From Takakia lepidozioides (taxonomy: Eukaryota; Plantae; Bryophyta), in NCBI GenBank assembly GCA_030704615.1, contig CM060734.1, positions 58,528,001 to 58,592,000 of the forward strand: DNA of 64,000 nt, in the 5' to 3' direction. The first letter of the stretch is position 1. Each line of letters opens with the position of its first letter. The position numbers and the translations under genes are program-made. Of this stretch, positions 566-27,564 are shown piece after piece. Under the pieces are notes generated by a model, which searched no databases, was not told the origin of the DNA, and saw only the letters and a program-made list of their open reading frames with translations.

Positions 566-3500
566 TCACCAGTAATCCCCACAAGAGCAACTTCCACCTT
601 GGAAGTGGTGAAAGCGGTTCGAATCCCGTACAATAACTGCTCGTCCCACTATCTTTGATATGAACTTGGTGGCAGTGTGGCAGTCACCACACACCCGAAG
701 GTTCTTGATCACGCGGATAGGTGTCCCAGGGGGTGTGCTGATGAGCCCAAAAGCAATGGCCAGCTTCTCACCATGGTGGCCAAGAGACAACTCCTTTTGC
801 TCCTCCTCCACATCATGCAATACAAAGCGTGTGTCAGGCACGTACCCTGCCTCCTTCATCTGACCAAACAACCTCTCCAGCTCAGTATGAATTTCTTCAG
901 TTTGCGGATGTGATCTGTCTTCTACAGCGAATTCATGCACCTTGTTGTTCAGCTCAATGCAGCTACGTCCGCGTTCCTTTCTGACACCTCTTTCCTCCAT
1001 CATTTCTCTCACCTTTGCTTTATCAGCCCACCTGCCAGCTGCAGCGTACATATTCGATAGCGTCACATATGATGGAGCATGCTGTGGATCTGCCTTGAGA
1101 CTGCATTTTGCAGCACGTTCTGCTAGCTCCATATTGCCATGAGCTCTGCAAGCACCAAGCAGGGCCCGCCAGACCCTGGCATCTGGTTCAATTGGCATTT
1201 GATTGATAAAGTCCTGTGCCTCATCCAGTCGCCCTGCACGCCCAAGAAGATCCACCATGCAGCCAAAATGCTCTACTGTAGGGGTGACACCATGATCTCG
1301 ACTCATGGAATCAAAGTACAGGCGGCCTTCATTGACTAGGCCTCCGTAGCTGCATGCAGAGAGAAGAGACATAAAGGTTATACTGTCTGGCTTCAAGCCT
1401 TCCTGTTGCATTTGCTCATAGATTTCAAAAGCCTCATCAGCATGCCCATGCTGGGCATATCCTGCGATCATGGCATTCCATGAGACAACATTTCTTTCAG
1501 CCATTTGTTTGAACACTTGATACGCATCCAGTAGGCTCCCACATTTAGCATACATGTCAAGAAGGGTAGTCTTCAAGTTAATACACCAGCCAATTCCAGC
1601 CTTGATGATGTCAGCATGGACTTGTTTGCCCTTTTCCAGAGCCCCTAGACTGGCACATGCATTGAGCACGCATATGAACGTAACCCTGTCAGGTATCACC
1701 CCTTCCAATTGCATTTCCTTGTACATTCTGAAAGCGTCTTCACCATGCCCATGCTGGACATAGCCTGCAATCATGGCATTCCATGAGACCACATTTCTTT
1801 CAGCCATTTTGTCAAACAATTGACGGGCATCTGTTAGGCTCCCACATTTGGCATACATATCAACAAGTGTGGTCTCCAAATTAATATATGACCCTATTCC
1901 AGCCTTGAGGATGTCAGCATGGACCCACTTTCCCTTTTCCAAGGCTCCTAGGCTGGCACATGCGTTGAGAACACAAATGAATGTGACCAAATCCGGCGTT
2001 GCACCTTCCCGTAGCATATGCTCATACATTTTCAAAGCCTCTTCACCATTCCCATGCTGGGCATAGCCTGCAATCATGGCGTTCCAAGAGACCACATCTC
2101 GTTCAGCCATTTGGTCAAAGACTTTACGCGCATCATTTATGCTCCCACATTTCGCATACATGTCAACAAGGGTTGTCTTCAAGTTAAGACATGATGAGAT
2201 TCCAGCTTTGAGGATGTCTGCATGAACACGCTTGCCCTTTTCCAGGTGTGCTAAGCTCGCACATGCTTTGAGAATGCAAATGAATGTGGACCCATTGGCC
2301 ACCACGCCTTCTTGTTGCATCCGCTCATACATTTTGAGAGCATCTTCACCATGCCCATGCTGGGCATAGCCTGTGATCATGGCGTTCCATGAGACCACAT
2401 CTCGTTCAATCATCTGGTCAAATATTTGTCGTGCATCCTTTACGCGCCCGCATTTGGCATATCCTGCGATCATAGCAGTCCATGAGACCACATTTCGTTT
2501 CACCATTTTATTGAACACTTGATGCGCATCCTTCATGCTCCCACATTTGGCATACATGTCAACAAGAGTAGTCTCCAAAGTAATATCAGACGCAATTCCA
2601 GTTTTGATGATTTCAGCATGGACCTGCTGCCCCCTTTCCAGGGCCCCTAGCCTGGCGCATGTATTGAGAACACAAGTGAAAGTGACCCTATCGGGCATCA
2701 CTCCTTCCCCTTGCATTTGCTCGTAGATCTCAAACGCCTTCTTAGCCTGCCCATTTTTGGCATATCCCTTGATCATCATAGTCCATGTAAATATGTCTCG
2801 TTCAGGCATTTTGTCAAACACTTCACGTGCATCCGACACGCTCCCACACTTGCTATACATGTTGATGAGGGTATTATCTAGAAAGATGCTTGGCTTGAAT
2901 CCACTTTGGATCAAGTGCGCATGCACCTGCTTTCCTTCTGCTAGGGCTTTCATGTTGATGCACCTCTCTAATAGACAGACATAAGTGTTGGATTCTGCCT
3001 GAAAGCCAGGTTGGTTCAGAATGTGCAGTGCCTCCTTCAGTCGTTTGTCCCTACAGAGTGACCTCACATCCTCATGAGTCCCACATGACCTATTGTTGAC
3101 TCCCTCTCTTTGTTTCCTTTCAAAACCAGGGGCGAGTGTGGAGGTGCTGCCACTCTGATGTCCAACAAACAATTGTGCATGACTCAACCATGGCATCCTG
3201 CAACTCAAAACACCTATAATTAAATTTTACTCAATGATATTGCAGTGGTCTGAGATACTTGAATGAAGATATCTCGGCGTGGAGACAAAAATTGAGAGAT
3301 TAACAGGGTTCAAATCTACTCCAGTCTATAATACTTCAAGACTGTAAGTCAAGCAATTCTAGTTGAAACCATCAACTCATCATCAACAAAACCATACCTA
3401 TTGCACTGTCGGCTTGGAGCACCCTGGTGCAAATTGACATAAGAAACAGCACCAGATGGTACTCGACCTTGCCCCATAGCAGCTAGCCCTCCATCCACCC

Positions 3501-5086
3501 AAGGTGGGTTAACCGAACTCTCAATCCATAAGACCTCATTTGTGCCATTATGTTTGGAGTCTGGCGATTTTGGAAATTTCTGTGAAAACCACAAATATAA
3601 GCATAAGCTTCAACAATCGGCTTGTATGGATTGGGCTAGAACACCAAAGCTCCAAAACATGTTTCATATAACAGGTATCCTTGAATGACCTTGAGCATAC
3701 TACTGTCAGTCCCTGTTAACCAGCAAGAACAACCTACTAATACCCACAATGAGACTCTTCAGGACAAAGAGCAACATGGATCTTAGCAACTGTAGATACA
3801 CCCAGTGACTGGAGATCCATAAAGTATCTTCATGTCAGTTTCTGTCCTGACTCACTTCCTAGATGAAGATAGTCTCACCTTCTCATTCCTGTTGTCAAAC
3901 GACCAAGAACGATCTAGGAAGGGCTCCTGCCAGATATGTTCTCTGCTCATTGTTTCATCTGCATACAAAATCTGCAAGAACATGATTGTTGCTAGCTTTC
4001 ACTTCTCTCAATCACTATTGACAGCTGGTGTAGCTTTGAAAAACATTCTCCAAGTCATGCACACACTGAGAAACATACAAACATACCAGAAATTACAGAT
4101 GTTGCAGAAGGTACTGTAGGGGCTTGCAGTGAACAGGCCCACCCTTACAAGCCAGGCTGATTGGGTGATACTCACAATCCTCCACCACCCTTGTCTGATC
4201 AGAATCTGAGAGTCCGCCATAATCTGCCATCCCACCAAGACCTGGCCACCTGTCTTGAAACTTCAATGGAGGTCCAATGTCCACAAGAGAAGGACCAGAC
4301 GTGGATATGTATCCACCATCGGATTGTATTCGACTTTGAGTCATGGCAGCTCGCTCTCCTTTCACCCGAGGGGGCTTCAACCAAGTCTCATACCAAAGGA
4401 CCTCCTTTGTGTCCGTAAGTCTTAGGTCTGCTGATATGGCGACAATCTGTGAAAACCACGAGTGTGAAGCTGAGTAGCCAAAGCTTCAACCACAGCCTCA
4501 AATAGACCAGGCGAAAAAAAAAATCTCTGCAGGCAAACAAAAGGCCACAACGGACCAGCTTCCATGCTACTGTGGAAAGACAGACAGGACGAACTACCGC
4601 AGGTATGACAGACAAAGACTGTCATAATTAAAACAATGGTTCAAAACTTCTAGTCAGACACTAAATTCAATGGGGCCAGTCTAGACAACCTCACCTTATG
4701 AAATCTGTTATCGCACCAGTGCCAATGATGTGACTTAAACTGAGCACCTGCAAGAAAATGCCACCAAACCATAAGATTTTTACGATCTCTTGATTATATG
4801 ATTCTTATGAGAAAAAACGGCTCTCTCTCTATCCCTCTGGACCTCTTAAGTGTGCGTAATAACTTTCTTCTTCTTCTTCTTCTTCTTCTCAGTCATATGT
4901 CACGGTGGTTGAACTTCTTCAACCAACATGGTGTACTTTTGCTGTCAGTTTGGAGCCTGGATGGCTCCTGCGGCACATGAGAACCCAGAAAATTGCAAGG
5001 ACTTTCGTGCTCGTACCCTCTTTCGGTATCCCTGAAGCCTTGGAAGGTCCCATGACCACCAATCGCACGGATCTCTGGCCTCGCAT
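566..5086 (-). CDS. PDF-motif (OSB-like) + PLS-PPR + E + DYW protein, paralog 1 (about 1095 aa, 6 exons)
   Basis: Proposed exons: 5086-5017, 4747-4695, 4446-4176, 3958-3879, 3579-3398, 3197-566. All introns are GT-AG with matching phases (1,0,1,0,2). The last exon encodes 18 PLS motifs, E1/E2 and DYW (HGEKLA...CGDCH...GDYW). Upstream exons give a degenerate PDF-1 (HWCDNRFHK|IVAISADLRLTDTKEVLWYE) and PDF-2 (IWQEPFLDRSWSFDNRNEK|KFPKSPDSKHNGTNEVLWIE). The start codon is uncertain; an upstream ATG at 5249 is out of frame. Confidence 0.85.
4865..4890. repeat. (TTC)n microsatellite
   Basis: About 8 TTC units in the first proposed intron of paralog 1. Confidence 0.9.
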
Positions 5087-5505
5087 TGTCAAGAGGTTTG
5101 TCCTGCTCCTTGACTGTAAGAAGAAATCAAGACCTTCACGATGGCGTCTTCCCGGAGCAGATTGCTACCATCCTCGTCTCCGTGTGCGAGCGAGCATCAC
5201 ACCTGAGAACTTCGAGCCTTTTCCACAACCGACTGCCGCACCTCCTCATGAATCGGGAGATCTAATCATGCATCAGTCGAGAGAGGAACATTCTTTCGTA
5301 TCCTAAACGAGTTTCTCGGCTCCTTTGCTTGCCTTCAACAGTAGGCCACTGTGGCAATTTTTTCTGAACGAAGATCATTGATAAATGGACGATGAGGCAA
5401 CATTTCGTTTTGATGACCTTAAAACTTTCCTCATGTCAACCCATTTCTCATTGACGCAACTTGAGGATCAAGTGCTCTGGTTCTGAATGGAACGATCTTC
5501 TCACG
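5087..5505. promoter_or_regulatory. Probable bidirectional promoter region between head-to-head paralogs 1 and 2
   Basis: The divergent first exons lie only about 260-420 bp apart. No specific cis-element was identified. Confidence 0.45.
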
Positions 5506-8500
5506 ATGGGCAACATGATGACCCCACACAAACGATTGAGCACATGCAACGATCGGGTCTGGAAGAGGACAGAAGATCGCAGGTGGGTTCCTCCCTCACG
5601 CAGGCATAGGGACGGTTGCAGCTTGGCAAGCAAGGGCCTGTTGTTCTCATTACCTCATTGGGCCGGATGCCTCACATCATGCACGACATTAAGGTGTCAG
5701 GCTGTAGAGCTCAAAGACACATCCACCTTGCCAGCGCAGGGCACAAGGTCCTTGCAAGTGATGGCTATGGCAGTTCCCACGCCTTCAGGGAAGCTCAAAG
5801 AAGGTATAGGCAAGCGACCCTTTTCTGTATCGTTAAATCTCCAATTCTTCGTCACATATAGACCCAGAAAGTGCAACCATTTGGTGGCAAGAAGTGCTGT
5901 ATAGGAACGTTGGCATGACCAACAGCCTTCCATCACCTCCTTCACTGTCGTATACATTCTTTGAGATACTTCTGTTTCTTTCTAAATGATAAATTCACCT
6001 GTGGAAGTCCTACCTCGCTCAATAAACGAGTAGTTTTTCGGTGGAAGAACTGATTTAACCTATATTGTCATCCAAAGAACTTAATTTCCATGGTGAAATT
6101 TACTGGACTATGCTTTCAGTTGCCTGGATTTACCATGCTGATCTCTCAGTCATAGTTCTTGTTGGATCGGTGGGTTATAAATCCATGAGTGGCTGGAATT
6201 TGGTTTTCTCGACGTAGTAGTAGCCTGTTGCTTGTAGGATGCATAGACATACTTGCCTGGTCTATACAAGTCTGTGGCTGAAGCTATGTCTGCTCAGCTG
6301 CACACTCGTGGTTTTCACAGAAAAGTTCAAGATCATCAGACTTCAGGCATAAGTTCACAAGGGAGGTCCTGTGGATTGAGACTCTGTCAATTCTCCCTTG
6401 TTGAAAGCAGAGCTAGCAACAATGACACAAAGTCGAACACAATTTGGTGTTGGGTTCTATTTGTGGTCTGATTATCAGAGCTCCATTGAAGATTCGAGTT
6501 GGGAGTCCAGATGCTGATGGGATGACATGTTATGGTCGAAGCAAAGAGTCTGATCAAACAAGGGCTGTGGCGGAGTGTGAGTTTGACCCAATTGGTCTGG
6601 CTTGGAGGGTGCCCTGTTCCCACAAGTTCAGTATCTCCTGCAAAATCTGTAATTTCTGCTTTTTTTTACGAGTGTATATAGATTGGAGCATGAGGTGGAG
6701 AAAGAGCCCGGAGTAACCTGCAGAAATGTTTCCAAATCTACACTAGCATTCCTCCAGAGAATCGAACCTGGAAACAGCTCTTATCTACTTGCGGTGTCTG
6801 GCATGCAGGTGTAAGACATCACGCTGAACAACTCTGGCATGAGTTCTTCTCAGATCTGTCACAGTTGTGGAACAACAGGTCAGAGAAGGTGAGAGGCATT
6901 AGGATGTAAGTCAAAGAAAGGTTTAGAGTGAACCTGGGTAAGGATGCTTTGTGGACTGGGACAGCATCTTTAGCTGCTAGTTTGAGTGACAAAATTTCTT
7001 TGTTCTTGAGGAGTTGCAATTATTGTCTGTACCGGTAGCATGTTCTGGCTTGTTAGCAGGATGGGAAAGTAGGCTGTTCAAAGTGGTTCCCTGTTACGTG
7101 CAAGAAGCTTGCGTGGTTGTTACCTGGTCTGGACAGGATTGTTATTAAACCTATTGCATATTGTCATTCTCACAGAAATATCCAAGATCACCAGATTTCA
7201 GACGTAAGAGCAATAAGAGGGTCCTGTGGATGGAGAGTTGGTTGAACTGCCATCCTATGAAAGGAGAGCTAGCTGTCATGATACATAGTCGATCACAATC
7301 TGGTAATGTTTCTGAAAGAGGGCCAAGACAGGGATTCAACAAGAAGTCTTCTGGACCTCATTGGGATGTAAGATCATTGTGTAAGGTGGGACGACTGAAA
7401 GAGGCGCTGCACATTTTGGACCAGACTGGCATACTAGCAGACTCCAGTACTTATGTCTGTCTCTTGCAGAGATGCATCATCATGAAAGCCCTTGCAGAGG
7501 GTAAGCAGGTGCATGCCCACATTATCCAAAATGGATTCAAGCCAAACATCTTTCTAGACAACACCCTAATCAACATGTATAGCAAGTGTGGGAGTGTGGT
7601 GGATGCACGCAAAGTGTTTGATAAAATGTCTGAACGAGACATGTTTACATGGAGTATGATGATTGGCGGATATGCCAAACATGGGCATGCTGAGAAGGCT
7701 TTTGAAATCTATGAACAAATGCAACGGGAAGGTGCGACGCCTGACAGGGTCATATTCACTTGTGTTCTGAATGTGTGTGCCAGGCTAGGAGTACTGGAAA
7801 AGGGCCAGCAGATCCATGCTGACATTGTCAAAACAGGAATTGTGCCAGATATTACCTTGGAGTCTAGCCTTGTTGACATGTATGCCAAATGTGGGAGCAT
7901 AAAAGATGCACGTCAAGTGTTTGAGAAAATGCCCGAACAAAATGTGGTGTCGTGGACAGCCATGATTGGAGGATATGTCAAATGCGGGAATATAAAGGAT
8001 GCGAAACTAGTGTTTGAAAAAATGTTGAAACGAGATGTTGTCTCATGGAACGCCATGATTGGAGGCTATGCTCAGCATGGGAATGGTGAAGAGGCTTTCA
8101 AAATGTACAAGCAAATGCAGAGGGAAGGCATGAGACCCAATGGGGTGACCTTCATTAGCGTTCTCAATGCTTGTGCCATCCTAGGAGATCTGGAAAAGGG
8201 TAAGCAGGTCCACGCTGACATCCTTAAAGCTGGAATCGTATCGTCTATTAATTTGAAGACAACCCTTGTGGACATGTACGCCAAATGTGGAAGCCTAAAG
8301 GATGCACGGCAAGTGTTTGATGAAATGGCTGAACAAAATGTTGTCTCATGGAATGCCATGATTGCAGGATATGCCCAACATGGGCATGGTGAAGAGGCTA
8401 TCCAAATGTATGATCGAATGCAACGAGAAGGAGTGATGCCTGACAGTGTCACATTCATCTGTGTTCTCAATGCATGTGCCAGCATAGGAGCTCTGGATAA

Positions 8501-9866
8501 AGGCAAACTGGTCCATTCTGACATTGTCAAAGCTGCAACTGTTTTATGCGTTAACTTGAAGACCACCCTTGTGGACATGTATTCCAAATGTGGGAGCGTG
8601 AAGGATGCACGTGAGGTGTTTGACAATATGGCTGAACGAGATGTCGTCTCATGGAATGCCATGATTGCAGGCTATGCTCAGCATGGGCATGGTGAAGAGG
8701 CTTTTCAAGTCTATGAGAGAATGCAACAGAAAGGAGTGATGCCCGACAGTGTCACATTCATGTGTGTTCTCAACGCATGTGCCAGCATAGGAGCCCTGGA
8801 TAAAGGCAAACTGGTCCATTTTGACATTGTCAAAGCTGCAACTGCTTCATGCGTTAACTTGAAGACCACTCTTGTTGACATGTATTCCAAATGTGGGAGC
8901 TTGAAGGACGCACGTGAGGTGTTTGACAACATGGCTGAACGAGATGCGGTCTCATGGAACGCCATGATTGCAGGCTATGCTCAGCATGGGCATGGTGAAG
9001 AGGCTTTTCGAGTCTATGAGAAAATGCAACAGAAAGGCTTGAAACCAGACAGTAGCACCTTCATCTCTCTTCTCTTTGCTTGTAGTCATATGGGTCTAGT
9101 GGATGAAGGCCGTCAGTTATTTGACTCCATGAGTATTCATGGCCTCACACCTACAGTGGAGCATTTTGGCTGCATGGTGGATCTTCTTGGCCGTGCAGGG
9201 CAACTGGATGAGGCGAGGGACCTTATTACCCAAATGCCAATGGATCCAGATGCTACGGTGTGGCGTGCCTTGCTTGGTGCCTGCAGAATTCATGGCGATC
9301 TGAAGCTAGCAGAACATGCTGCAAAATGTATTCTCATGTTGGATCCAGAGCAATCTGCAGCTTATGTGCTGCTATCAAACATCTATGCTGTGGCTGGCAG
9401 GTGGGATGACAAAGAGAAGGTCAGACAGATGATGAAGGATAGAGGTATTAGAAAGGAGCCTGGGCGCAGTTGGATTGAGGTGAACAACCAGGTGCATGAA
9501 TTTGTTGTAGAAGACAAATTGCATCCACAAATCAAGGAGATCCATGCTAAGTTGGAGAGATTGTCTGGGCAGATGAAGGAGGCTGGATATGTGCCTGACA
9601 AACGTTTTGCATTGCATGATGTAGAGGAGGAGCAAAAGGAAATTTCTCTTGGCTACCACAGTGAGAAGCTTGCCATTGCTTTTGGGATCATCAATACGCC
9701 CCCTGGGACACATATTTGCATCATGAAGAACCTTCGAGTATGCGGAGATTGTCATACCGGCACCAAGTTCATCTCAAAGATTGTTGGTCGAACAGTCATC
9801 TTGCGGGATGCCAGCCGCTTTCACCACTTCCAAGATGGGTTTTGCTCTTGTGGGGATTACTGGTGA
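5506..9866 (+). CDS. PDF-motif (OSB-like) + PLS-PPR + E + DYW protein, paralog 2 (about 1022 aa)
   Basis: Proposed exons: 5506-5803 (phase 1), 6809-6888 ([19 protein letters not shown], phase 1 to 0) and 7176-9866 ([11 protein letters not shown]...VLWME, 18 PLS motifs, PG box [25 protein letters not shown]). The model skips a disabled PDF-1 exon at 6321-6576. Confidence 0.88.
6321..6576 (+). pseudogene. Disabled PDF-1 exon inside paralog 2
   Basis: Acceptor ttttcacag and donor gtgagt are retained. It begins [20 protein letters not shown], then has two compensating frameshifts with three in-frame stops. Homologous to paralog 1 exon 4446-4176. Confidence 0.75.
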
Positions 9867-12014
9867 CGCCACCAACATGCAAGATGGAAGACAAGTGTGT
9901 TTTTCAAAGATGAGGGTGGTTGTCGTTATTGAAGCATTGTAAACTGGAAGGATATAACTGGTGTCCGGAAGTGCAATAGTCAGGACCTTAATGACAACCA
10001 TGTTAATGATTATAGTTCAAATGTGAGTATTGAAGTTATGGGAAACCTTCTGAAAATATTTTGTTGGCTTCAGTGCTTCACCAAGGACTTAGGAATTTGA
10101 TTGAAGGAAGATGCCTCTCCGATTTGCAGTGAATGCTTGCAACAGCATAAGGTGCAGATGCCTCTAGTGCTGGGAAGCAGGAGTGTAATCAAGCAGAGTG
10201 CAACAAAGGCAGAATCATGCACAGTGATGAAGGAGATACTTGGGCACGGTTTGCAAATTCAAGTGCAGAACGCCTGGTGCAACACGGATCTACGAAGAAG
10301 TTGGAGGAGATGATGGATCTTAACATTCACATTGTTGCTTCTTCCAGCCTGACAGACGGCTGGAACCAATGCGTGTGCTACTGCTCAACTTCAACGCATG
10401 CCTTTACCCATTCAGGCTGCAGTACATTTTCCAGGAGTTTCTTGTTCAGCTTGGGTGTTCCCTATCTGCACATAATTTTAAATGCCCTATGCAATGGCCA
10501 ACAATATTGAGTGTTGCCTTTGTGGAGCTTGGAAGTAAAGCAGATCCCCTTTAAAAGTCTGACAACAGAAGTTTTTGCAACTTGGTGCTGTTCTAAATTA
10601 TGAGATGCCCGCGTACCTAATTCGGCAGTCATTCAATCTAAGTGGCTTTGATATGAATGGGTTAAATGCCACAGGAGCTTGCCATGTAAGGTCCATGTAA
10701 GGTGATGCAAAAGCTGGTCATGCAGGTCCTACACTGAGACAAACCATTACTAATGCAAACTGGCTGCTCTATCCCTGTTAGCACCAGAAGACTCGAGAAG
10801 TATATACGCGTGAGGAAGGATCAGAGCAGAATTTCGAAGGGATGATTGCTTGTTTGAGCTTTGTCCATTGCAGGTATCTATCCAAGAGAGATTGGAACCA
10901 GTCTAGATGTACTCGAATTGTCAGCAAATGACAGTGATTTCGACCTACAGGTGACAATTGCAGCATAACCCTTGAAAGCTTCATTACATTGAGACCACAC
11001 AAGACAATTGTACAAGAGAGGAAGGTTCCCCCAGGGGGAGTGAAAAACAAAAGGAAAGCAAATAATAGTCCTTGTGATTGACTCAAGCCTATCGCGTGTC
11101 CAATCCTGCTGCTTGAAGCACATCACACTTTTGCGGAAGGGAGTGGGTAAGAGAGAGCTGAAAGGCAAGATGAAGCCATGCCAGCTACGTCTGCCCGCAG
11201 TGTAGACATGGCTTGTACTCAGTTGCATGTTGTCTAACTGACGCTGAAACATCGAAAAATCCCCACTGCAGACGGTAGGAATGCATCCTCAGGCCGACAG
11301 CTACCAAGGCGGGCGGTTCCTGCCTGGAGCGGCCAATCGAGAAAGCAAATCTGATCTGAAGGGACAATCAATCACTTGTAAAAGCTCTGCAGATTTTCCT
11401 GCCTATGACCACCCTTGTGAAGTCGATAACTATTTGCATCACTCCCTTCGATGACAAATCAAAAGCGCTCAGAATGTTTCTATTGTAGCTCTGGAGATAA
11501 GGCATACGATCAGCTCTGTATTCACATCGACATCCATTCAAATGATCATGGAAGCACAGCTGTACAATCAAGTCCCGCTTTATTCATTGTAATAGAGGAG
11601 TCCAGTTCTAGAATTCAGCTCAACTGAAAACTAAGCTTCACATGGGATTGTAGGAGCATACAGATAATGTCAAGTATGTCCACAAATGCCCCACATGAAG
11701 GATCACGTAGTTAACGCAGGTTCAGCCAAGGCTCTAGGCAAGCAAACAGGCCTTGCTCTATGTACTATAAAGCGACAGAAAAAGCCATCGAAGCTCTTAA
11801 CGCACACGATACCAGCTCCAAGTGACTCTTGACAACCAAAGCTCATTGTACCAGGCTACGAAGCAACTTATACTTGTTGCTGTTAGTATCTAATGTACGC
11901 TGCTCAACAGGTTGAGCACTCGCGTCTAAAAAGCAAGAGGTAAAGACGGACTTTCGGTCTGAGGACCCCTGAGGACTCGTGTCCATGTGACGGGGGAGAA
12001 GTAGAGTTGCCGGG

Positions 12015-12656
12015 CTACTCCTTGATGGGCACAACATCACCAAGAACCATAGCTTCTAGTGCTTCCTCTGTTGCTTCCACTGCTGCAGCGATTGTGGGAC
12101 TTGGCTGGGTCTCAGGCTGGTCAACAGCGGCCTCAGCCGCAGGCTGGGGATCGAATGGACTACTGATGGGATGCACACTCGGGGGAGCTGAGTGAGGACG
12201 ACGAGGATGACACAAAGCTGCAGATCGACAGCCATGGTGCTTCATGTGCTTCTTATGCAAATGCCGTCTTCCATGGAAAAAGATGGGCGGAGGTGAGAAA
12301 GCCCTCACAATTGGTGCCATCGGAGTGGAAGGTCCACAATCTTTAGGACCATCAAGCGAACTGGGTGGGCAGGGCATGGCACCACGAGCGGAGCCATGTT
12401 CAAGGCCATGACCGTGGCCATGGTGGTGGCGATGTCTGTGGTGGCCACCGTGCTTCACACGGTGGCCATGGTGATGATGAAAGCCGTGGCCTCGCAAGCC
12501 ACCATACCGGCCAGACCCATCTAAGGAAAACACCGTAGCATCCACCCCGTCGACACCAGAAGCCATGGCGAGCCTCTCTGAAGCCTCAGTACCCAGCGAG
12601 AAGAAGAGAAAACGCTTGTGAGATTTAGCCATCTCTCTAAACGACCCACCTCCCAT
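12015..12656 (-). CDS. His/Gly-rich, Pro-rich hypothetical protein, copy 1
   Basis: Open frame from ATG 12656 (or 12566) with HGFHHHHGHRVKHGGHHRHRHHHGHGHG and an acidic C-terminus. A TATA-like stretch lies near 12797. No recognised domain. Confidence 0.5.
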   Translation of the reverse strand: MGGGSFREMAKSHKRFLFFSLGTEASERLAMASGVDGVDATVFSLDGSGRYGGLRGHGFHHHHGHRVKHGGHHRHRHHHGHGHGLEHGSARGAMPCPPSSLDGPKDCGPSTPMAPIVRAFSPPPIFFHGRRHLHKKHMKHHGCRSAALCHPRRPHSAPPSVHPISSPFDPQPAAEAAVDQPETQPSPTIAAAVEATEEALEAMVLGDVVPIKE

Positions 12657-13388
12657 CTTTCTACGTCCGACACAATCTCCGAGCCTCACTCCAAGGTGAT
12701 CGATAAGAAGATCTGTAGGCAGATGACGGCAAGCTCTCGCTATAAACGAGCAATGGCTTGGAGTGCAAGGCAAGCCATCCTCTGGTCGGTGCTACGTATA
12801 TATAAAGAAATACACACCTCTAGGTCGGTACCTACTGTACCAAACACAAGTATGTATTATAAATTAGCTTGCGTATGATCTACGCTCGCGAGTTCTAATT
12901 TTGTCTTCCTATTTCACCGAAGATGATCTGGCAATCTAATGTATGTCTTTGAACAAAGCACACACACAAATCAATTGGTAACTTGAGCTCATGCAGACAT
13001 CCCTTGATACATCTGCATGAATCTTCCATTCTCCTAAACTCTCTAGATTGCTGGAAGAACTTACTACAAAATTATCATTTGGACGTGAGCAGATGTCCCT
13101 GATCACATTATGACTATGAACCAGTTTCAATTTTGAGACAGGTTTGGTTTGATGGATGTTTGAATAAAGTAAGTACTCTTCATTGAACTAAGAGGTGAAT
13201 CAGTCCCGAATCAGTACAAGGTCATTTGATAATCAGCGAAGAAATGTCGCACTTCGATTGCGCCACCCTCTGTCGCCTGGGCGAGATCAAGTGCTAGAAC
13301 ATACATTAGCCCTGATTGTAGTGTTCTTACTGCGGTTCGTTTTGTGTTTTTGGTGTGTGGTGGAGCAACATCGAAGATCTTCTAAAGG

Positions 13389-14441
13389 TCACCTTATTTT
13401 TGTCTCCCAGTTGAGTTCATAGGTACCTTCGATGAGCTCAAACTTTCTACTTCTGCGATTATTGTCCGGGCCAGTCCACGGGAAAACTGTGTCTCCCCAC
13501 GCAGCTGTCATTACATCATAAAGACCGACGTCAGGATCCCAAAGAGCAGGCTTGAAGGCAATGAATCTGTCTCCACTCACCACCTCATAATCCTGGGAGG
13601 AAGACTGCTTGTGTGTTTCTGTTCTTTAGAAACAATCTTTTGAAAAGATGGTCAGGCATCAGGCCATTCTGCACTGGGCCATAGGAGCCTGTGGGGGGGG
13701 GGCCGTCTGGATTGAGGAGAACTTCAACAACCAGAATTTGATCGCATTTAGAATTTCTTCCGGATGTGGTGCTGTCAGATATGTCTGACGGCAAGTCTCA
13801 AGGTATGCTCAACCTACCGGTGGCTGGATTGTATCTAACTGAAAGAGACCAGGCTGCAACAATGCTGAGGTCGGTTGCTGCGGAATGCATGGCGTCGATG
13901 AGTGGATTAACTCCGGAAGAGGAGCTGGCTGTTCTACAGTTGCTTCTTTCCTGCTTTGCCAACACCTATGATCTGGAGGTTTGTTTACATTGAAACATGC
14001 CTATCCGGTTCTGCTTTGCTTGAACAAGTGGTATCTTCAACAGATGTCACTGAGGGGATCAGTACGAGTGATGGCGAACACTTTATCTGCACCGGCTCTC
14101 ACTACCTTGGGAGGTTCCACAGGCGCTGTGATCTGAGACGCTCCCAAAAAGAAAAATCGAAGATCAGTCTTTGGCGCCTACTCTTACTTACATTGAAGTA
14201 TATGACAGCTGGGTTTTTCTGATCTCTAAGGGCATAGGGTCGCGGACGGATTCTTAGTCCTCCCATGTATACTCCATAGTTGATGACGGCACATCCTGTG
14301 CGCCCGCCCATGGCTTTGTATGCATTTCTAGCATACTGGAGTGTGTCAAAATGGGTCCAATTCCGCTCCTTTGAAGAATACACAGCCAAAACCATCTCAT
14401 CTATGGGTTGCCTTGGGTTTACTGCTTGAATATGTTCATAC
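13389..14441 (-). pseudogene. Truncated duplicate of the 3' end of the F-box-like gene
   Basis: Matches 19127-19880 but has frameshifts and a 293-bp insertion at 13768-14060. Confidence 0.9.
13768..14060 (+). other. Captured filler DNA with an exon-like fragment from another gene
   Basis: Absent from the paralogous site (ccggatgt|agtacgag at 19497/19498), with no TSD. Open frame ...LPVAGLYLTERDQAATMLRSVAAECM...TYDLE followed by a donor-like gtttgt. Confidence 0.7.
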
Positions 14442-14443
14442 TG

Positions 14444-14677
14444 CAGTAGCACCTTCATCTCTCTTCTCTTTGCTTGTAGTCATATGGGTCTAGTGGATGA
14501 AGGCCGTCAGTTGTTTGACTCCATGAGTATTTATGGCCTCACACATACGGTGGCGCATTTTGGCTGCATGGTGGATCTTCTTGGCCGTGCAGGGCAGCTG
14601 GATGAGGCGAGGGACCTTATTACCCAAATGCCAATGGATCCAGATGCTACGGTGTGCGTGCCTTGCTCGGTGCCTGC
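14444..14677 (+). pseudogene. PPR L2-S2-E1 fragment copied from paralog 2
   Basis: Near-identical to 9050-9283 ([15 protein letters not shown]...[13 protein letters not shown]). Confidence 0.9.
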
Positions 14678-16194
14678 TGCAATTGTCACCTGTAGGTCGA
14701 AATCACTGTCATTTGCTGACATTTCGAGTACATCTAGACTGGTTCCAATCTCTCTTGGATAGATACCTGCAATGGACAAAGCTCAAACAAGCAATATTCC
14801 CTTCGCAATTCTGCTCTGATCCTTCCTCACACGTAAATACTTCTTTTGAGTCTTCTGGTGCTAACAGGGATAGAGCAGCCAGTTTGCATTAGTAATGGTT
14901 TGTCTCAGTGTAGGACCTGCATGACCAGCTTTTGCATCACCTTACATGGACCTTACATGGCAAGCTCCTGCGGCATTTAACCCATTCATATCAAAGCCAC
15001 TTAGATTGAATGACTGCCGAATTTGGAACGCGGGCGAATTAGAATTTAGAACAGCACCAAGTTGCAAAAACTTCTGTTATCAGACTTTTAAAGGGGATCT
15101 ACTTTACTTCCAAGCTCCACAAAGGCAAGACTCAATATTGTTGGCCATTGCATAGGGCATTTAAAATTATGTGCAGATAGGGAACACCCAAGCTGAACAA
15201 GAAACTCCTGGAAAATGTACTGCAGCCTAAATGGGTAAAGGCATGCGTTTAAGTTGAGCAGTAGCACACACATTGGTTCCAGCCGTCTGTCCAGGCGTTC
15301 TGCACTTGAATTTGCAAACCGTGCCCAAGTATCTCCTTCATCACTGTGCATGATTCTGCCTTTGTTGCACTCTGCTTGATTACACTCCTGCTTCCCAGCA
15401 CTAGAGGGATCTGCACCTTATGCTGTTGCAAGCATTCACTGCAAATCGGAGAGGCATCTTCCTTCAATCAAATCCCAAAGTCCTTGGTGAAGCACTGAAG
15501 CCAACTAGATATTTTCAGAAGGTTTCCCATGACTTCAATACTCACATTTGAACTATAATCATCAACACGGTTGTCATTAAGGTCCTGACTATTGCACTTC
15601 CGGACACCAGTCATTTCCTTCCAGGTTACAATGCTTCAATAACGACAACCACCCTCATATTTGAAAAACACACTTGTCTTCCATCTTGCATGTTGGTGGC
15701 GTCACCACTAATCTCCACAAGAGCAAAACCCATCTTGAGATGAACTTGGTGCCGGTATGACATGATGCGAATATGTGTCCCAGGGGGCGTATTGATGATC
15801 CCAAAAGCAATGGCAAGCTTCTCACTGTGGTAGCCAAGAGAAATTTCCTTTTGCTCCTCCTCTACATCATGCAATGCAAAACGTTTGTCAGGCACATATC
15901 CAGCCTCCTTCATCTGCCCAGACAATCTCTCCAACTTAGCATGGATCTCCTTGATTTGTGGATGCAATTTGTCTTCTACAACAAATTCATGCACCTGGTT
16001 GTTCACCTCAATCCAACTGCGCCCAGGCTCCTTTCTAACACCTCTATCCTTCATCATCTGTCTGACCTTCTCTTTGTCATCCCACCTGCCAGCCACAGCA
16101 TAGATGTTTGATAGCAGCACATAAGCTGCAGATTGCTCTGGATCCAACATGAGAATACATTTTGCAGCACGTTCTGCTAGCTTCAGATCGCCAT
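14678..16194 (-). pseudogene. Inverted copy of the paralog 2 E-DYW region and downstream flank
   Basis: Reverse complement of about 9290-10965. The DYW segment (about 15700-16194) has deletions removing most of KNLRVCGDC and RDASRFHHF. Confidence 0.92.
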
Positions 16195-17205
16195 TCATTA
16201 CAGAGAGACCACACAAGACAATTGTACAAGAGAGGAACGGTTCCGCCAGGGGGACGTGAAAAACAAAAGGAAAGCAAATCATAGTCCTTGTGATTAACTC
16301 AAGCCTGTCGCGTGTCACATCACACTTTTGCGGAAGGGAGTGGGTAAGAGAGAGCTGAAAGGCAAGATGAAGCCATGCCAGCTACGTCTGCCCGCAGTGT
16401 AGACATGGCTTGTACTCAGTTGCATGTTGTCTAACTGACGCTGAAACATCGAAAAATCCCCACTGCAGACGGTGCATCCTTAGGCCGAAAGCTACCAAGG
16501 CGGGCGGTTCCTGCCTGGAGGGGCCAATCGAGAAAGCAAATCCGATCTGAAGTGACAATCAATCACTTGTAAAAGCTCTGCAGATTTTCCTGCCTATGAC
16601 CACCCTTGTGAAGTCGATAACTATTTGCATCACTCCCTTCGATGACAAATCAAAAGCGCTCAGAATGTTTCTATTGTAGCTCTGGAGATAAGGCATACGA
16701 TCAGCTCTGTATTCACATCGACATCCATTCAAATGATCATGGAAGCACAGCTGTACAATCAAGTCCCGCTTTATTCATTGTAATAGAGGAGTCCAGTTCT
16801 AGAATTCAGCTCAACTGAAAACTAAGCTTCACATGGGATTGTAGGAGCATACAGATAATGTCAAGTATGTCCACAAATGCCCCACATGAAGGATCACGTA
16901 GTTAACGCAGGTTCAGCCAAGGCTCTAGGCAAGCAAACAGGCCTTGCTCTATGTACTATAAAGCGACAGAAAAAGCCATCGAAGCTCTTAACGCACACGA
17001 TACCAGCTCCAAGTGACTCTTGACAACCAAAGCTCATTGTACCAGGCTACGAAGCAACTTATACTTGTTGCTGTTAGTATCTAATGTACGCTGCTCAACA
17101 GGTTGAGCACTCGCGTCTAAAAAGTAAGAGGTAAAGACGGACTTTCGGTCTGAGGACCCCTGAGGACTCGTGTCCATGTGACGGGGGAGAAGTAGAGTTG
17201 CCGGG

Positions 17206-17847
17206 CTATTCCTTGATGGGCACAACATCACCAAGAACCATAGCTTCTAGTGCTTCCTCTGTTGCTTCCACTGCTGCAGCGATTGTGGGACTTGGCTGGG
17301 TCTCAGGCTGGTCAACAGCGGCCTCAGCCGCAGGCTGGGGATCGAATGGACTACTGATGGGATGCACACTCGGGGGAGCTGAGTGAGGACGACGAGGATG
17401 ACACAAAGCTGCAGATCGACAGCGATGGTGCTTCATGTGCTTCTTATGCAAATGCCGTCTTCCATGGAAAAAGATGGGCGGAGGTGAGAAAGCCCTCACA
17501 ATTGGTGCCATCGGAGTGGAAGGTCCACAATCTTTAGGACCATCAAGCGAACTGGGTGGGCAGGGCATGGCACCACGAGCGGAGCCATGTTCACGGCCAT
17601 GACCGTGGCCATGGTGGTGGCGATGTCTGTGGTGGCCACCGTGCTTCACACGGTGGCCAAGGTGATGATGAAAGCCGTGGCCTCGCAAGCCACCATGCCG
17701 GCCAGACCCATCTAAGGAAAACACCGTAGCATCCACCCCGTCGACACCAGAAGCCATGGCGAGCCTCTCTGAAGCCTCAGTACCCAGCGAGAAGAAGAGA
17801 AAACGCTTGTGAGATTTAGCCATCTCTCTAAACGACCCACCTCCCAT
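17206..17847 (-). CDS. His/Gly-rich hypothetical protein, copy 2
   Basis: Duplicate of 12015-12656 with four amino-acid differences and an intact frame. Confidence 0.5.
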   Translation of the reverse strand: MGGGSFREMAKSHKRFLFFSLGTEASERLAMASGVDGVDATVFSLDGSGRHGGLRGHGFHHHLGHRVKHGGHHRHRHHHGHGHGREHGSARGAMPCPPSSLDGPKDCGPSTPMAPIVRAFSPPPIFFHGRRHLHKKHMKHHRCRSAALCHPRRPHSAPPSVHPISSPFDPQPAAEAAVDQPETQPSPTIAAAVEATEEALEAMVLGDVVPIKE

Positions 17848-17998
17848 CTTTCTACGTCCGACACAATCTCCAAGCCTCACTCCAAGGTGATCGATAAGAA
17901 GATCTGTAGGCAGATGACGGCAAGCTCTCGCTATAAACGAGCAATGGCTTGGAGTGCAAGGCAAGCCATCCTCTGGTCGGTGGTGCTTACGTATATAC

Positions 17999-18571
17999 CA
18001 GTGTTGGTCGGTTATCAGGGACCCTCAGGTTATTTGTCGGGTGAGGGTAACTATAGCCGAAGGTTATGAGCATAAAAGAGAACCGTGGACACTGAACACC
18101 ACCAGTACTGCACAACTCAAATACCTGGAGCAACACCCTAAACATGTGAGTGAATAGCATATGAAGACATAGAACCGACCCGGATGTCTTTTAAGTGGAC
18201 GGAAGCGGTTATAGTAGCTATGGTTTGGTGGCAAATTGTAGTTTTCTTTTGGTATCCTTTTTTCACTATGTACATTGAGGTTGAAACGGCACATTGAACC
18301 TGAGCGATAGGTTCTGCAGCCTGCCTAGAGTATTTCAATTATATCCGATGGTAGGCAGGTTATATTTTGGTTACAACAAAGACCCGACTTGAAATGAATC
18401 GGCAAATAACCTGACCACACATATTGTTCAAATTTTCATAACGGTAACCTGCAAATAACCTTCATTCAATGTGCATATTTCACCTAGAACCGGAGGTTAT
18501 TACTGCGTTGAGTCAACTTGTATAACCTGAACCTCATGAGCTTTGAAAAAAATGATAACCAACCAACACTG
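17999..18571. mobile_element. Non-autonomous hAT element (MITE)
   Basis: TIRs CAGTGTTGGTCGGTTATCA and TGATAACCAACCAACACTG (1 mismatch in 19). 8-bp TSD GTATATAC at 17991-17998 and 18572-18579. Absent from the duplicated copy. Confidence 0.95.
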
Positions 18572-19126
18572 GTATATACACACCTCTAGGTAGGTACCTA
18601 CTGTACCAAACACAAGTATGTATTATAAATTAGCTTGCGTATGATCTACGCTCGCGAGTTCTAATTTTGTCTTCCTTTCTTTCACCGAAGATGATCTGGC
18701 AATCTAATGTATGTCTTTGAACAAAGCACACACACAAATCAATTGGTAACTTGAGCTCTTGATACATCTGCATGAATCTTCCATTCTCCTAAACTCTCTA
18801 GATTGCTGGAAGAACTTACTACAAAACTATCATTTGGACGTGAGCAGATGTCCCTGATCATCACATTATGACTATGAACCAGTTTCAATTTGAGACAGGT
18901 TTGGTTTGATGGATGTTTAAATTAAGTAAGTACGCTTCAAAACTAAGAGGTGAATCAGTACAAGGTCATTTGATAATCAGCGTAAAAATGTCCGATTGCG
19001 CCACCCTCTGTCACCTGGGCGAGATCAAGTGCTAGAACATACATTAGCCCTGATTCTGGTGTTCTTACTGCGGTTCGATTTGTGTTTTTGGTGTGTGGTG
19101 GAGCAACATCGAAGATCTTCTAAAGG

Positions 19127-22100
19127 TCACCTTATTTTTGTCTCCCAGCTGAGTTCATAGGTACCTTCGATGAGCTCAAACTTTCTACTTCTGCGATTAT
19201 TGTCCGGGCCAGCCCACGGGAAAACTGTGACTCCCCACGCAGCTGTCATTACATCATAAAGACCGACGTCAGGATCCCAAAGAGCAGGCTTGAAGGCAAT
19301 GAATCTGTCTCCACTCACCACCTCATAATCCTGGGAGGAAGACTGCTTGTGTGTTTCTGTTCTAAACAATCTCTTGAAAAGATGGTCAGGCATCAGGCCA
19401 TTCGGCACTGGGCCATAGGAGCCTGTGGGGGTGCCGTCTGGATTGAGGAGAACTTCAACAACCAGAATTTGATCGCATTTAGAATTTCTTCCGGATGTAG
19501 TACGAGTGATGGCGAACACTTTATCTGCACCGGCTCTCACTACCTTGGGAGGTTCCACAGGCGCTGTGATCTGAGACGCTCCCAAAACAGAAAAATCGAA
19601 GATCAGTCTTTGGCGCCTACTCTTACTTACATTGAAGTATATGACAGCTGGGTTTTTCTGATCTCTAAGGGCATAGGGTCGCGGACGGATTCTTAGTCCT
19701 CCCATGTATACTCCATAGTTGATGACGGCACATCCTGCGCGCCCGCCCATGGCTTTGTATGCGTTTCTAGCATACTGGAGTGTGTCAAAATGGGTCCAAT
19801 TCCGCTCCTTTGAAGAATACACAGCCAAAACCATCTCATCTATGGGTCGCCTTGGGTGTACTGCTTGAATACGTTCATACGTGGATATGGCAACTGGATC
19901 GTGGTTATTTAGAACATGTCCCAGAACAATGAGACGGTACCTCGAGCGTGATGCATCTGCAAAACTGAAGCATGCGACCTTGTCTTCGAGTATCTTATTA
20001 GGAATGGGGGGCAATATTGCGAACTCTTTGGTGAGAACGTTGGCAACGATCACCACTGATTGTCCCCTTACGGAGTCGAATTCTGGTCGAGACCAATGCG
20101 CTGGGACAGTACCAGTGCTAGGTTGCAAAAACTGTGTCCCGCCATCCATTACGAAAAGGCCATTGCTTGCAGCGATGACACGATCCACAAAGCCTGGAAT
20201 GAACGCTAGACTGGGCAAGAATACCCAATCGTAATATCGGCCAGCTTCCCGACGCGTCTGGGACAGATCATGATCGAATCCGTACATCAAGTGTCCTGGC
20301 CGGTTCTTCACGAGTATGACTGGAAAATATCGCTGGTACTTTCTTAGCGCAGGATCCGCAAATGAGGAGGCTGTCCAAATTGGAACTCTGGCATCGACAT
20401 GAAATCTCTCTAAGGCTCGATCCCTCTCTACTGTTAGGTTTGGGAGGTCCATGTTGATCCAGGCGGTGTCCAATTTCTCTACTGGAATCCTAGTCATAAC
20501 AGCACTTCGTACGCTGGCAGGCAGGTTATTACCCCACCCAATGCCTGCATCATGAGAAGAAATATAATCGACAAGTGGTAGGGCTGCTGCTAAAACACTT
20601 GCATCCTGCTCAGGACTAGGATCCGTTGAAGCCAAAGAATCCGAAGACTCGGTTTCGGTTGCAGGCTCAGGTGTTTTTTCTCGAAGTGGATTCATGACTT
20701 GTGGGTTGGAAGGATCCGCGACGTTGTCAGTTCGCTGACGTTTAGAAGGATTAGTGTCGGCTGGTGGCGACCCTGGTGGTTCCGGAGAGGCTCTAGATCG
20801 AGAGCCGGGTGGACTGTTGATATATTCAGGAACGGTGCTTTCTACACACGTTACACAAGCTGTGGTATCAGGCTCAGGGCCACCTTCGCAAGAGTAGACC
20901 GGTGGAGATACTAAGGGAAGTTGCTGAGTGGGATCTGTCATATATGCCCTCAGCGGTACCGTCTCTATGTTTTGGTTTACAGGAACCTGCGAAAGAGGCT
21001 GGTCCGTCTCCAAGGTGTCTACCAATTCATCTAAAGTGACGGCTGCAGAGGTGAGCTGCATCCACACCCTATCCATCACGTCACTTGCAATTGACGCTGG
21101 TGTGGAGGCCGCGTCCGTCATCACTGTATCTATTATGGCATTTACTCTCCTGGATGGAGAAGATCGAGTGGGCATCGAAGTGTCGACGTACGTTGCAGAG
21201 GTTGACGCTGCTGCATGATGAGACGGGTCCATCATCGTGGTGTCTATCCGATTTAAGTCATTTCCAGTTATCGGTTGAGCAGGTACTGCGCTTGACGTGG
21301 TGGCAGTGGTGGCCCTTACAGCCACCTCCTGCTCATCGGGATCAACCAACACCGTTTCGATCCATGCTACGTCTTCAGCTGACTGTAGCTCTGCGCTGCA
21401 TCCACACGTGTTTGGAGGCAACAATGCCTGCTCCACGTCGTCACCTTCCGTAAGCAAGGCCACGAAACCTTGTGCTGGTAACTGATTATCTGCGGAAGCT
21501 TGTGCCCCATCACCACTGTTGAGTTCACGTGGTGATGGAGAGGCTCTGGGAGCTGACTGGGCTGTTGGAAATCTGGACAAAGCACCACTGCTATCTACTT
21601 CAATTTCAAGTAAGTGGTCGGCGACTCCATCCTGATCAAGACGACGATCCCATTCTGGAAGGGCGATGGTATCAGTCCCTGGGCTACGTGGTGTACGAGG
21701 CTCCTCCTCAAGTGCAACAGTCTCATTATCATCCCTAGACGTTTGCAACCCTTGGTGACTTGATGAGACCGAAGCGGTACTACCTTGCCTCTGTAAAAGT
21801 GGACGATTTGGACTTGGCGGTGGCCGAGAATTCTCATCAGCGTGGTCATCGTCTTGTAGGTTAAAGGCATTAAGCACGCCGTTGTAGAAATCTTCCAGTT
21901 CCGGAACAGGGGCCCTTGTAACATGAGCTCCACTTACGTAACTCTGAAGGGGCATGTCCTGAAACGGGTCAGCCCTACTTAGATGACCAAGAAGATCCAG
22001 GTCAGCTCTACTGAAGCCAAGCTGCTCAGCTGGGTCCAACGGCACTGGCCATGGCACAGTGTCTGGCTGGGGCAAAACACAAGCAACCATCTGATTACAG

Positions 22101-22213
22101 GCATCATTGTATGCATTAACCTCGGCACTTACTTCAGCAAGTTCCTCGGCAATTTGCTTGCGAGTCACCGAACGCGAGGTACTATCAGTACTTCCAGACG
22201 ATCCCGAGGCCAT
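19127..22213 (-). CDS. Intronless F-box-like protein (1028 aa) with a long disordered acidic N-terminus and a C-terminal F-box-associated/kelch-like region
   Basis: Degenerate F-box WGNNLPASVRSAVMTRIPVEKL, then the plant F-box-associated signatures WVFLPSLAFIP, VIAASNGLFV, VIVANVLTKEFAILPPIP and VYSSKERNW. Confidence 0.7.
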   Translation of the reverse strand: MASGSSGSTDSTSRSVTRKQIAEELAEVSAEVNAYNDACNQMVACVLPQPDTVPWPVPLDPAEQLGFSRADLDLLGHLSRADPFQDMPLQSYVSGAHVTRAPVPELEDFYNGVLNAFNLQDDDHADENSRPPPSPNRPLLQRQGSTASVSSSHQGLQTSRDDNETVALEEEPRTPRSPGTDTIALPEWDRRLDQDGVADHLLEIEVDSSGALSRFPTAQSAPRASPSPRELNSGDGAQASADNQLPAQGFVALLTEGDDVEQALLPPNTCGCSAELQSAEDVAWIETVLVDPDEQEVAVRATTATTSSAVPAQPITGNDLNRIDTTMMDPSHHAAASTSATYVDTSMPTRSSPSRRVNAIIDTVMTDAASTPASIASDVMDRVWMQLTSAAVTLDELVDTLETDQPLSQVPVNQNIETVPLRAYMTDPTQQLPLVSPPVYSCEGGPEPDTTACVTCVESTVPEYINSPPGSRSRASPEPPGSPPADTNPSKRQRTDNVADPSNPQVMNPLREKTPEPATETESSDSLASTDPSPEQDASVLAAALPLVDYISSHDAGIGWGNNLPASVRSAVMTRIPVEKLDTAWINMDLPNLTVERDRALERFHVDARVPIWTASSFADPALRKYQRYFPVILVKNRPGHLMYGFDHDLSQTRREAGRYYDWVFLPSLAFIPGFVDRVIAASNGLFVMDGGTQFLQPSTGTVPAHWSRPEFDSVRGQSVVIVANVLTKEFAILPPIPNKILEDKVACFSFADASRSRYRLIVLGHVLNNHDPVAISTYERIQAVHPRRPIDEMVLAVYSSKERNWTHFDTLQYARNAYKAMGGRAGCAVINYGVYMGGLRIRPRPYALRDQKNPAVIYFNVSKSRRQRLIFDFSVLGASQITAPVEPPKVVRAGADKVFAITRTTSGRNSKCDQILVVEVLLNPDGTPTGSYGPVPNGLMPDHLFKRLFRTETHKQSSSQDYEVVSGDRFIAFKPALWDPDVGLYDVMTAAWGVTVFPWAGPDNNRRSRKFELIEGTYELSWETKIR

Positions 22214-27200: not shown

Positions 27201-27564
27201 GAGCCTGAACGACTCTGAAGCACAGTTTAGAGAAAGCCCACAAATTAGAAGAGAGAATCATGGCTCTACCTTTTCCTGAAGGCTTGGTAGTCGTCATAGC
27301 CACCACTAGAACGGATCTCGGGCCTGGCATTGCCGAGGTCGATGCCCCTTCGAGCTCCACGGCCTCACCCCATAATCTGCTTCGTGAAGTGAGGCACCAC
27401 CGCAGATGCGGTATAGAAGAAGACATGGAAGTTAGAGGAGTATCGGAGCACTCTGCCAGCAACTCCGTGTTTGCGTGTGTGAGACAAGGAACAACCCACC
27501 CGTAAGCTTCCATACTCTTCCAGGGATTGTAGAACCTCCTCAGTGGTCTCTGGCGATTGGTCAT
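24217..27564 (-). CDS. PDF-motif (OSB-like) + PLS-PPR + E + DYW protein, paralog 3 (about 909 aa, 4 exons)
   Basis: Proposed exons: 27564-27270, 27138-26890, 26664-26585, 26322-24217, with phases 1,1,0. The spliced product has the best PDF motif, [19 protein letters not shown]|[32 protein letters not shown], then 12 PLS motifs, E and DYW (HSEKLA, CGDCH, GDYW). Confidence 0.88.

Follow-up and report, generated by a model that had tools for sequence, protein, structure and literature searches.

A stretch of 64,000 nucleotides (nt) of the moss Takakia lepidozioides (assembly GCA_030704615.1, contig CM060734.1, positions 58,528,001 to 58,592,000; hereafter the window) contains three paralogous PPR-E-DYW genes, which are called here P1, P2 and P3. 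Upstream of the PPR array these genes carry a small module, split over two exons, that corresponds to the PDF motif of OSB proteins. P1 and P2 are probably old duplicates within an ancient PDF-PPR-DYW architecture; in these two genes the module would still stand in frame but be decaying, whereas P3 has kept it. All searches were run exon by exon, by reference.

Pfam matches to PPR repeats, E, E+ and DYW_deaminase were obtained in P1, P2 and P3. PPR scores are 365-370 bits (370 in P1) and those of E_motif 49-80 bits; Eplus_motif was found in P1 and P2, and DYW_deaminase reaches 144 bits in P1 and 138 bits in P2 over profile positions 1-93. The zinc-ligand motifs of the DYW domain read H-G-E or H-S-E and C-G-D-C-H, both P1 and P2 terminate in G-D-Y-W, and their large open reading frames (ORFs) extend over 880 and 901 codons, respectively. 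Tandem PPRs followed by E1/E2 and a DYW domain with HxE, CxDCH and terminal DYW are the features of PLS-class proteins, and P1, P2 and P3 share the array, E1/E2 and the DYW cytidine deaminase with the canonical PLS-class editing factors. Synonymous divergence (Ks) in the PPR-E-DYW part is 0.52-0.67, which makes the three copies old, with roughly equal distances between them. The ratio of nonsynonymous to synonymous divergence (Ka/Ks) in the same part is 0.21-0.31 over more than 630 codons, which indicates purifying selection, another trait in common with canonical factors. P1 and P2 are predicted from their sequences to be PLS-class PPR-E-DYW genes for an organellar C-to-U RNA-editing factor, both the targeting and the editing being part of the prediction.

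The original prediction drew attention to an exon of exactly 80 nt, running from phase 1 to phase 0, in both P1 and P2. Its coordinates, length and phase were confirmed by direct reading and by script (Table 1). Each 80-nt exon consists of two lead bases and 26 codons, the last of which is AAG, and is followed by gtgaga; each comes directly after an AG, which in P1 belongs to tgcag. The predicted tcacag|AAA acceptor was found where the next exons of P1 and P2 begin, and both of these exons open with K-F/Y-P-x-S-P-D ... V-L-W, as had been proposed. P3 has an equal 80-nt exon and an equal acceptor. The 9-nt donor of the exon, AAGGTGAGA, is identical in P1, P2 and P3, and so are the acceptors. 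There is not a single indel across the three copies in 188 nt comprising the 80-nt exon and the first 108 nt of the next exon, while the flanking introns lead one to expect approximately 7.3 indel events for 188 nt on the three-copy tree (P ~6.5e-4). For the 80-nt exon taken alone 3.1 indels are expected (P 0.044). In addition, none of the six half-module exons of P1, P2 and P3 contains a stop codon. Profiles made from relatives in other plants score 11-46 bits on the first halves of P1-P3 and 23-58 bits on the second halves, compared with about 8-12 bits for the best match elsewhere in the six frames of the window. Conservation of the 80-nt exon in the three copies exceeds chance.

The module comprises about 57 residues spread over two exons and follows the pattern W..FF..P..WWDNR..K ... 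PDFKHK ... LW ... P.WV. No Pfam model covers it, either in the separate exon pieces or in whole Diphasiastrum proteins. Peptide deformylase and plant defensin, the other possible meanings of PDF, were rejected, since Pfam shows neither. The PDF motif of OSB proteins has approximately 50 residues, and single-stranded DNA binding has been reported for AtOSB1/2 (PMC6963530, PMC4166229). A 40-position profile of the second half was built from ten 40-residue segments, each from one exon (three from the window, four from Diphasiastrum, one from Sphagnum and two from Calypogeia). Among 1.84 billion representative proteins it matched 639 at E <= 1e-3 and 179 at E <= 1e-10. The 96 matches of 200-1000 amino acids (aa) include 34 with the Pfam SSB domain (PF00436; best 1.9e-23) and eight with PPR. 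The PPR-linked profile recovered the SSB-domain proteins at E 1e-21 to 1e-33, and in three of them (P0177, P0197 and P0198) the SSB domain is followed by two to three C-terminal modules. These matches are called OSB-type by architecture alone, as none is named OSB by its source cluster. A second profile of 58 columns, built locally from 48 PPR-linked modules, gives 72-86 bits per module on SSB-domain proteins over nearly its full length. Since profiles made from PPR-linked modules alone retrieve SSB-domain proteins, the kinship between the module and the OSB motif is genuine, and the label "PDF motif", given at first from the letters of the window, holds. Judged by these profiles, the module ahead of the PPR arrays is a true PDF motif.

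The two groups of proteins nevertheless differ in architecture. Both have the same module of about 50-57 residues, and tandem copies are found in the OSB and PPR-linked groups alike. In OSB proteins, however, an SSB-like OB fold is followed by C-terminal PDF motifs and there are no PPRs, whereas in the window genes the module is N-terminal of PPR-E-DYW and no OB fold is present. Indeed, Pfam detected no SSB domain in P1, P2 or P3, and because they have no OB fold they are not OSB genes. The gene structures are also different. In the one OSB gene that was mapped, that of Sinapis alba (L007), three modules lie in one 711-nt exon, while in the PPR genes a phase-0 intron splits each module; the split is thus a feature of the PPR-linked lineage. 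An AlphaFold2 model of the PPR-linked module, made from a 70-row alignment, has a pLDDT of 92.9 and forms a small helix-strand-strand-helix unit. In the PDB no solved relative of the model stood above chance (best Foldseek E 6.4, best VIA-align Z 3.1), so the fold gives no functional clue. A look-alike search of the ESM Atlas with the module of P0041 returned no usable match, and a word search with the first 75 residues of the last P3 exon gave five candidates, none of them significant. Two profile matches are built otherwise: P0276 (1526 residues) combines three PDF-like stretches with a kinesin motor domain that, according to Pfam, comes after them, and P0169 of Kingdonia uniflora (1160 aa) has 13 PDF stretches. 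These are either other PDF architectures or fused gene models.

Proteins with the same arrangement are found in other seed-free plants. The best relatives of the last P2 exon, from the lycophyte Diphasiastrum complanatum, are approximately 50% identical to it, and none exceeded 53% in the word search. In many annotated Diphasiastrum proteins a complete module stands directly before the PPR array; some have two to three modules and some an upstream remnant. At least 62 Diphasiastrum complanatum clusters of PPR proteins carry the module, in a search limited to one such module in which every cluster returned was from Diphasiastrum. PPR-DYW proteins of Sphagnum jensenii and Calypogeia fissa have it as well. 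When the proteins of five relative genes from Diphasiastrum, Sphagnum and Calypogeia, comprising seven first-half exons, were mapped onto their DNA, a phase-0 intron was found to split the module after the D-N-R-x-x-K codon in all five genes, and the first half occupied a short phase 1-to-0 exon with AAG|gt at its end. This exon has 80 nt in four of the seven cases (Sphagnum, one Calypogeia gene and two Diphasiastrum modules) and 83, 71 and 89 nt in the other three. The window genes have the same phase-0 intron after D-N-R-x-x-K and the same type of short exon. The Diphasiastrum genes O6H91_15G000200 and O6H91_11G109000 and the Sphagnum and Calypogeia proteins thus resemble P1-P3 in their PDF-PPR(-DYW) architecture, in the intron position and phase, often in the exon length, in having one to three modules, and in upstream remnants. 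They differ in that their modules are well conserved, in contrast to the eroded ones of P1 and P2, and their overall identity to P2 is only about 50%. A Logan contig of 4755 nt, assembled from the public sequencing run SRR4210093 of another plant, has a single unbroken ORF of 1371 codons that covers three modules together with a PPR array. It is best read as a spliced messenger RNA, because introns stand at these points in the genomic copies of each of the four lineages examined.

It had been argued from the three copies that the architecture is shared and that the fusion is real and predates the duplications. Exon length, phase and acceptor in P1, P2 and P3 bear this out, and for the age the claim was too modest: gene annotations of a lycophyte, a moss and a liverwort show an identical split, so the fusion is much older than the duplications in the window. 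In the literature on the PDF motif together with PPR, DYW or OSB neither a description of a PDF-PPR-DYW fusion nor a published name for it was found, and an N-terminal PDF module is not described for canonical PLS-class PPR-DYW factors in the searchable literature. In a 2026 survey of the OSB family, which retained a protein only if it had an OB fold as well as a PDF domain, PPR is unmentioned (PMC13393729). Motif patterns detected no module in Ginkgo and Cryptomeria proteins among the top 120 matches. The PDF-PPR-DYW architecture is real and ancient, and apparently undescribed.

The state of the module itself differs between the copies. Its Ka/Ks, for which counts over 61 codons were summed across the two exons, is 1.00, 1.63 and 0.96 for the three pairs, the value of 1.63 being that of P1-P3. 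Compared with the PPR-E-DYW part, the ratio of nonsynonymous to synonymous changes is significantly different in the module (Fisher p 1e-5 to 3e-3), and in the linker adjoining it Ka is also about equal to Ks. At the nucleotide level the copies are 62-69% identical in exon 4, 54-60% in intron 4 and 68-70% in intron 3, so exon 4 is no more similar than the introns (54-70%). A set of 28 near-invariant positions was defined as those at least 90% conserved in outgroup modules. P3 keeps 26 of the 28, P1 20 and P2 19 (Fisher p 0.025). In the first half (14 positions) P1 keeps eight and P2 eleven; in the second half P2 keeps 8/14, and there its P-D-F is retained but the N-P-x-W-V stretch is lost. First-half profile scores are 46.2 bits for P3, 36.4 for P2 and 11.3 for P1, and second-half scores 58.3 for P3, 45.9 for P1 and 22.6 for P2. 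The Pro-Asp-Phe signature is present as S-P-D-F in P2 and P3, while P1, which reads P-D-S and K-H-N, is a recognizable but eroded copy. The P3 module is nearly intact. Conservation of the exons seemed to imply a working PDF motif, and for P1 and P2 this implication is not supported: Ka/Ks is 1.0-1.6, eight to nine of the 28 residues are lost, and dN/dS of the PDF exons, set beforehand as a refuting test, came out close to neutral. By that test the module of P1 and P2 evolves about neutrally, and the motif appears to be decaying under relaxed constraint.

A second, degenerate PDF module lies upstream of the main one and was overlooked in the first reading. In P1 it is formed by exons 2 and 3, which score 13.6 bits against the first-half profile (exon 2) and 16.8 bits (exon 3), and the exon 3 relic of P2 scores 28.2 bits over profile positions 1-21. 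P1, P2 and P3 all have this upstream module in degenerate form, and in P2 the exon that carries it is broken. Over the final 150 nt of exon 3 every indel of P1 relative to P2 and P3 is a multiple of three. Exon 3 was also considered as an ORF ending at a TAA common to all copies (4095-4093 in P1). This was replaced by a T|GTGAGT donor approximately 80 nt upstream, which P1, P2 and P3 have in common and which is preferred because it restores phase 1 in every copy and because frame-breaking indels are found only downstream of it, in the intron.

The layout of the genes is given in Table 1. With these exons P1 forms a single open frame across six GT-AG exons and P3 across four. P2 has the same layout as P1 and P3, but its exon 3 is broken as a coding exon, although the relic keeps its tcacag acceptor and its T|GTGAGT donor. 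P2 therefore needs either exon 1 to be spliced straight to exon 4 or a downstream start codon. Splicing of exon 1 to exon 4 is phase-compatible in all three copies, both being phase 1. The putative exon 1 of P1 was placed by its homology to exon 1 of P2 and P3 in the three-copy alignment. P1 and P2 are divergent, and the head-to-head arrangement with closely spaced first exons holds for the putative first-exon ATGs and for the longest in-frame ATGs alike. Intron 4 measures 299 nt in P1, 287 nt in P2 and 262 nt in P3. The phase-2 intron of P1 is absent from P2 and P3, which is consistent with these two having the lowest Ks and thus forming the closest pair; an intron of the Diphasiastrum genes resembles it in phase and, roughly, in position.

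Table 1. Positions in the window of the PPR-E-DYW genes P1, P2 and P3 and of their parts.
Feature	Positions	Strand	Description
P1, whole gene	566-5053	minus	Large ORF 566-3208
P1 putative exon 1	5053-5017	minus	ATG at 5053, alternative (longest) in-frame ATG at 5086; phase-1 end before GTACGA
P1 exon 2	4747-4695	minus	53 nt, phase 1 to 0, ends AAG|gtgagg; shortened first half of upstream degenerate PDF module
P1 exon 3	4446-4176	minus	Degenerate second half of upstream module and linker; T|GTGAGT donor, phase 1
P1 exon 4	3958-3879	minus	80 nt; first half of PDF module, strongly eroded
P1 exon 5	3579-3398	minus	Second half of PDF module (P-D-S, not P-D-F) and linker; phase-2 end at AG|GTATGG
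P1 extra intron	3397-3198	minus	200 nt, GT-AG, phase 2; between PDF linker and PPR array
P1 exon 6	3197-566	minus	PPR array, E1/E2 motifs, DYW deaminase domain; ends G-D-Y-W and stop
Shared 5' region of P1 and P2	5054-5760		Putative bidirectional promoter and 5' ends
P2, whole gene	5761-9866	plus	Large ORF 7161-9866
P2 putative exon 1	5761-5803	plus	ATG at 5761, longest in-frame ATG at 5506; phase-1 end before GTATAG
P2 exon 3 relic	6321-6576	plus	Second half of upstream PDF module and linker; stops in all three frames
P2 exon 4	6809-6888	plus	80 nt; first half of PDF module
P2 exon 5	7176-9866	plus	Second half of PDF module, linker, PPR array, E1/E2, DYW domain
P3, reference paralog	24217-27297	minus	Large ORF 24217-26337
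P3 exon 1	27297-27270	minus	
P3 exon 3'	27138-26890	minus	
P3 80-nt exon	26664-26585	minus	80 nt
P3 last exon	26322-24217	minus	

The 3' end of P2 and DNA downstream of it (9050-10965) recur at 14444-16220 as an inverted copy with 97% identity. The copy leaves a truncated E-DYW fragment (ORF 15626-16318) that covers DYW profile positions 1-47 only and is a recent partial pseudogene. Next to it, 11119-14441 and 16316-19880 form a tandem segmental duplication, 98-100% identical and offset by about 5.2-5.7 kb. Each duplicate has an ORF of 252 residues rich in His and Pro (12015-12773 and 17206-17964), which has no Pfam match. No Pfam family was found either for an ORF of 1028 residues on the minus strand (19127-22213); a piece of its C-terminal end recurs within the duplicated segment (ORF 14102-14458). 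On the minus strand at 31683-33676 several ORF pieces resemble exons of a putative membrane amino-acid transporter gene.

The history that best accounts for these observations would be the following. P1 and P2 would have arisen by old local duplication (Ks about 0.5-0.7) of a PLS-class PPR-E-DYW editing-factor gene, whose architecture places one or more modules of ~57 residues between a targeting leader and the PPR array. Each module would be built of two exons, namely the short phase 1-to-0 exon with AAG|GT at its end and the first part of the exon after it, and the ancestor of P1, P2 and P3 would have had two such modules in tandem. In P1 and P2 the downstream module would stay within the frame that continues into the PPR-DYW part, and its length, phase, open frame and splice sites would therefore be kept. 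The motif residues would no longer matter in these two genes, only the frame and the splicing, while P3 would keep a working copy. We infer that the module exons are spliced and translated in P1 and P2, and that the module helps the editing factor to hold single-stranded nucleic acid but is dispensable in these two copies. Several points weigh against this history. No P1 or P2 transcript or protein of the species itself was found, none of the 342 fetched proteins being at least 75% identical to the window, so the case for splicing of P1 and P2 is a comparative one. The broken exon 3 obliges P2 to skip an exon or to start downstream, and the P1 leader is short. The PG box of P1 reads E-R-G-R-S-C-I-E and that of P2 E-P-G-R-S-W-I-E; the conserved Pro is gone from P1 despite purifying selection across the region. 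Ka/Ks over 61 codons is noisy, relaxation and diversifying selection being inseparable at this length, and values around 1 together with intron-like identity would suit untranslated exons too.

Indeed, the upstream exons of P1 and P2 might be noncoding, either as exons of the 5' untranslated region or as dead relics of a PDF leader. The proteins would then be plain PPR-E-DYW, with translation starting further downstream, for example at a Met that P1 has within exon 4 and P2 near the beginning of exon 5. The neutral Ka/Ks of the module, the intron-like identity of exon 4, the loss of eight to nine near-invariant residues and the stops in every frame of P2 exon 3 all agree with this possibility, as do the in-frame ATG within the 80-nt exon of P1 and P3 and two Diphasiastrum gene models that start at the corresponding Met. 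Against it, no indel is present where 7.3 are expected; the donor and acceptors are identical in three copies, the six half-module exons are free of stops, and the indels at the end of exon 3 keep to multiples of three. Furthermore, a start within exon 4 or 5 leaves no space for an organelle-targeting leader. We therefore regard noncoding exons as unlikely.

Still less probable is that P1, P2 or both are wholly unexpressed pseudogenes and that the conserved exons are a leftover of recent duplication. The lack of a transcript-derived protein of the species among the 342 fetched, the altered PG box of P1 and the broken exon 3 of P2 would fit such an explanation, and the truncated copy of the P2 3' end marks the region as prone to rearrangement. 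The copies are, however, old, and yet they retain their long open frames, full DYW domains and a Ka/Ks far below 1, which requires long-lasting purifying selection on the PPR-E-DYW part. It might also be proposed that the module of P1 and P2 is diversifying under positive selection toward a new binding partner instead of decaying. A Ka/Ks that reaches 1.6 between P1 and P3 and lies at about 1.0 in the remaining pairs, with frame and splice sites strictly kept, would be compatible with that. No estimate is significantly above 1 at 61 codons, though, the neighboring linker has Ka ~ Ks as well, and the changes strike residues that are near-invariant in PPR-linked and OSB-type modules alike, which makes this proposal the hardest to credit. 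Decay of an in-frame module in two old duplicates thus remains the preferred reading.

PPR-DYW proteins, whose known parts comprise the PPR array, E1/E2 and DYW, are the C-to-U editing enzymes of plant organelles, and work is under way to turn them into RNA base editors. A conserved N-terminal module binding nucleic acid would be a new component, with possible consequences for affinity, choice of the editing site or coupling of editing to the nucleoid. Many seed-free plant genes have the module, and it recurs in proteins binding single-stranded DNA of organelles. The split-exon signature, which this genome has in common with a liverwort, a moss and a lycophyte, offers a simple aid to annotation, as the small exon frequently escapes gene callers. 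One intact and two eroding copies in the same window are also natural variants that bear on the need for the module. As a tentative and rather doubtful extension, PDF-PPR-DYW proteins might constitute an ancient, undescribed class of organellar editing factors, at least as old as the common ancestor of bryophytes and lycophytes, in which a mini-domain for single-strand binding, shared with OSB proteins, the guardians of DNA recombination in mitochondria and plastids, assists or tethers the PPR array, and the P1-P3 cluster would show its loss in two copies whose editing part is still under selection. If this is true, the cluster would give a small-scale picture of how the module might have been lost from the editing factors of other lineages.

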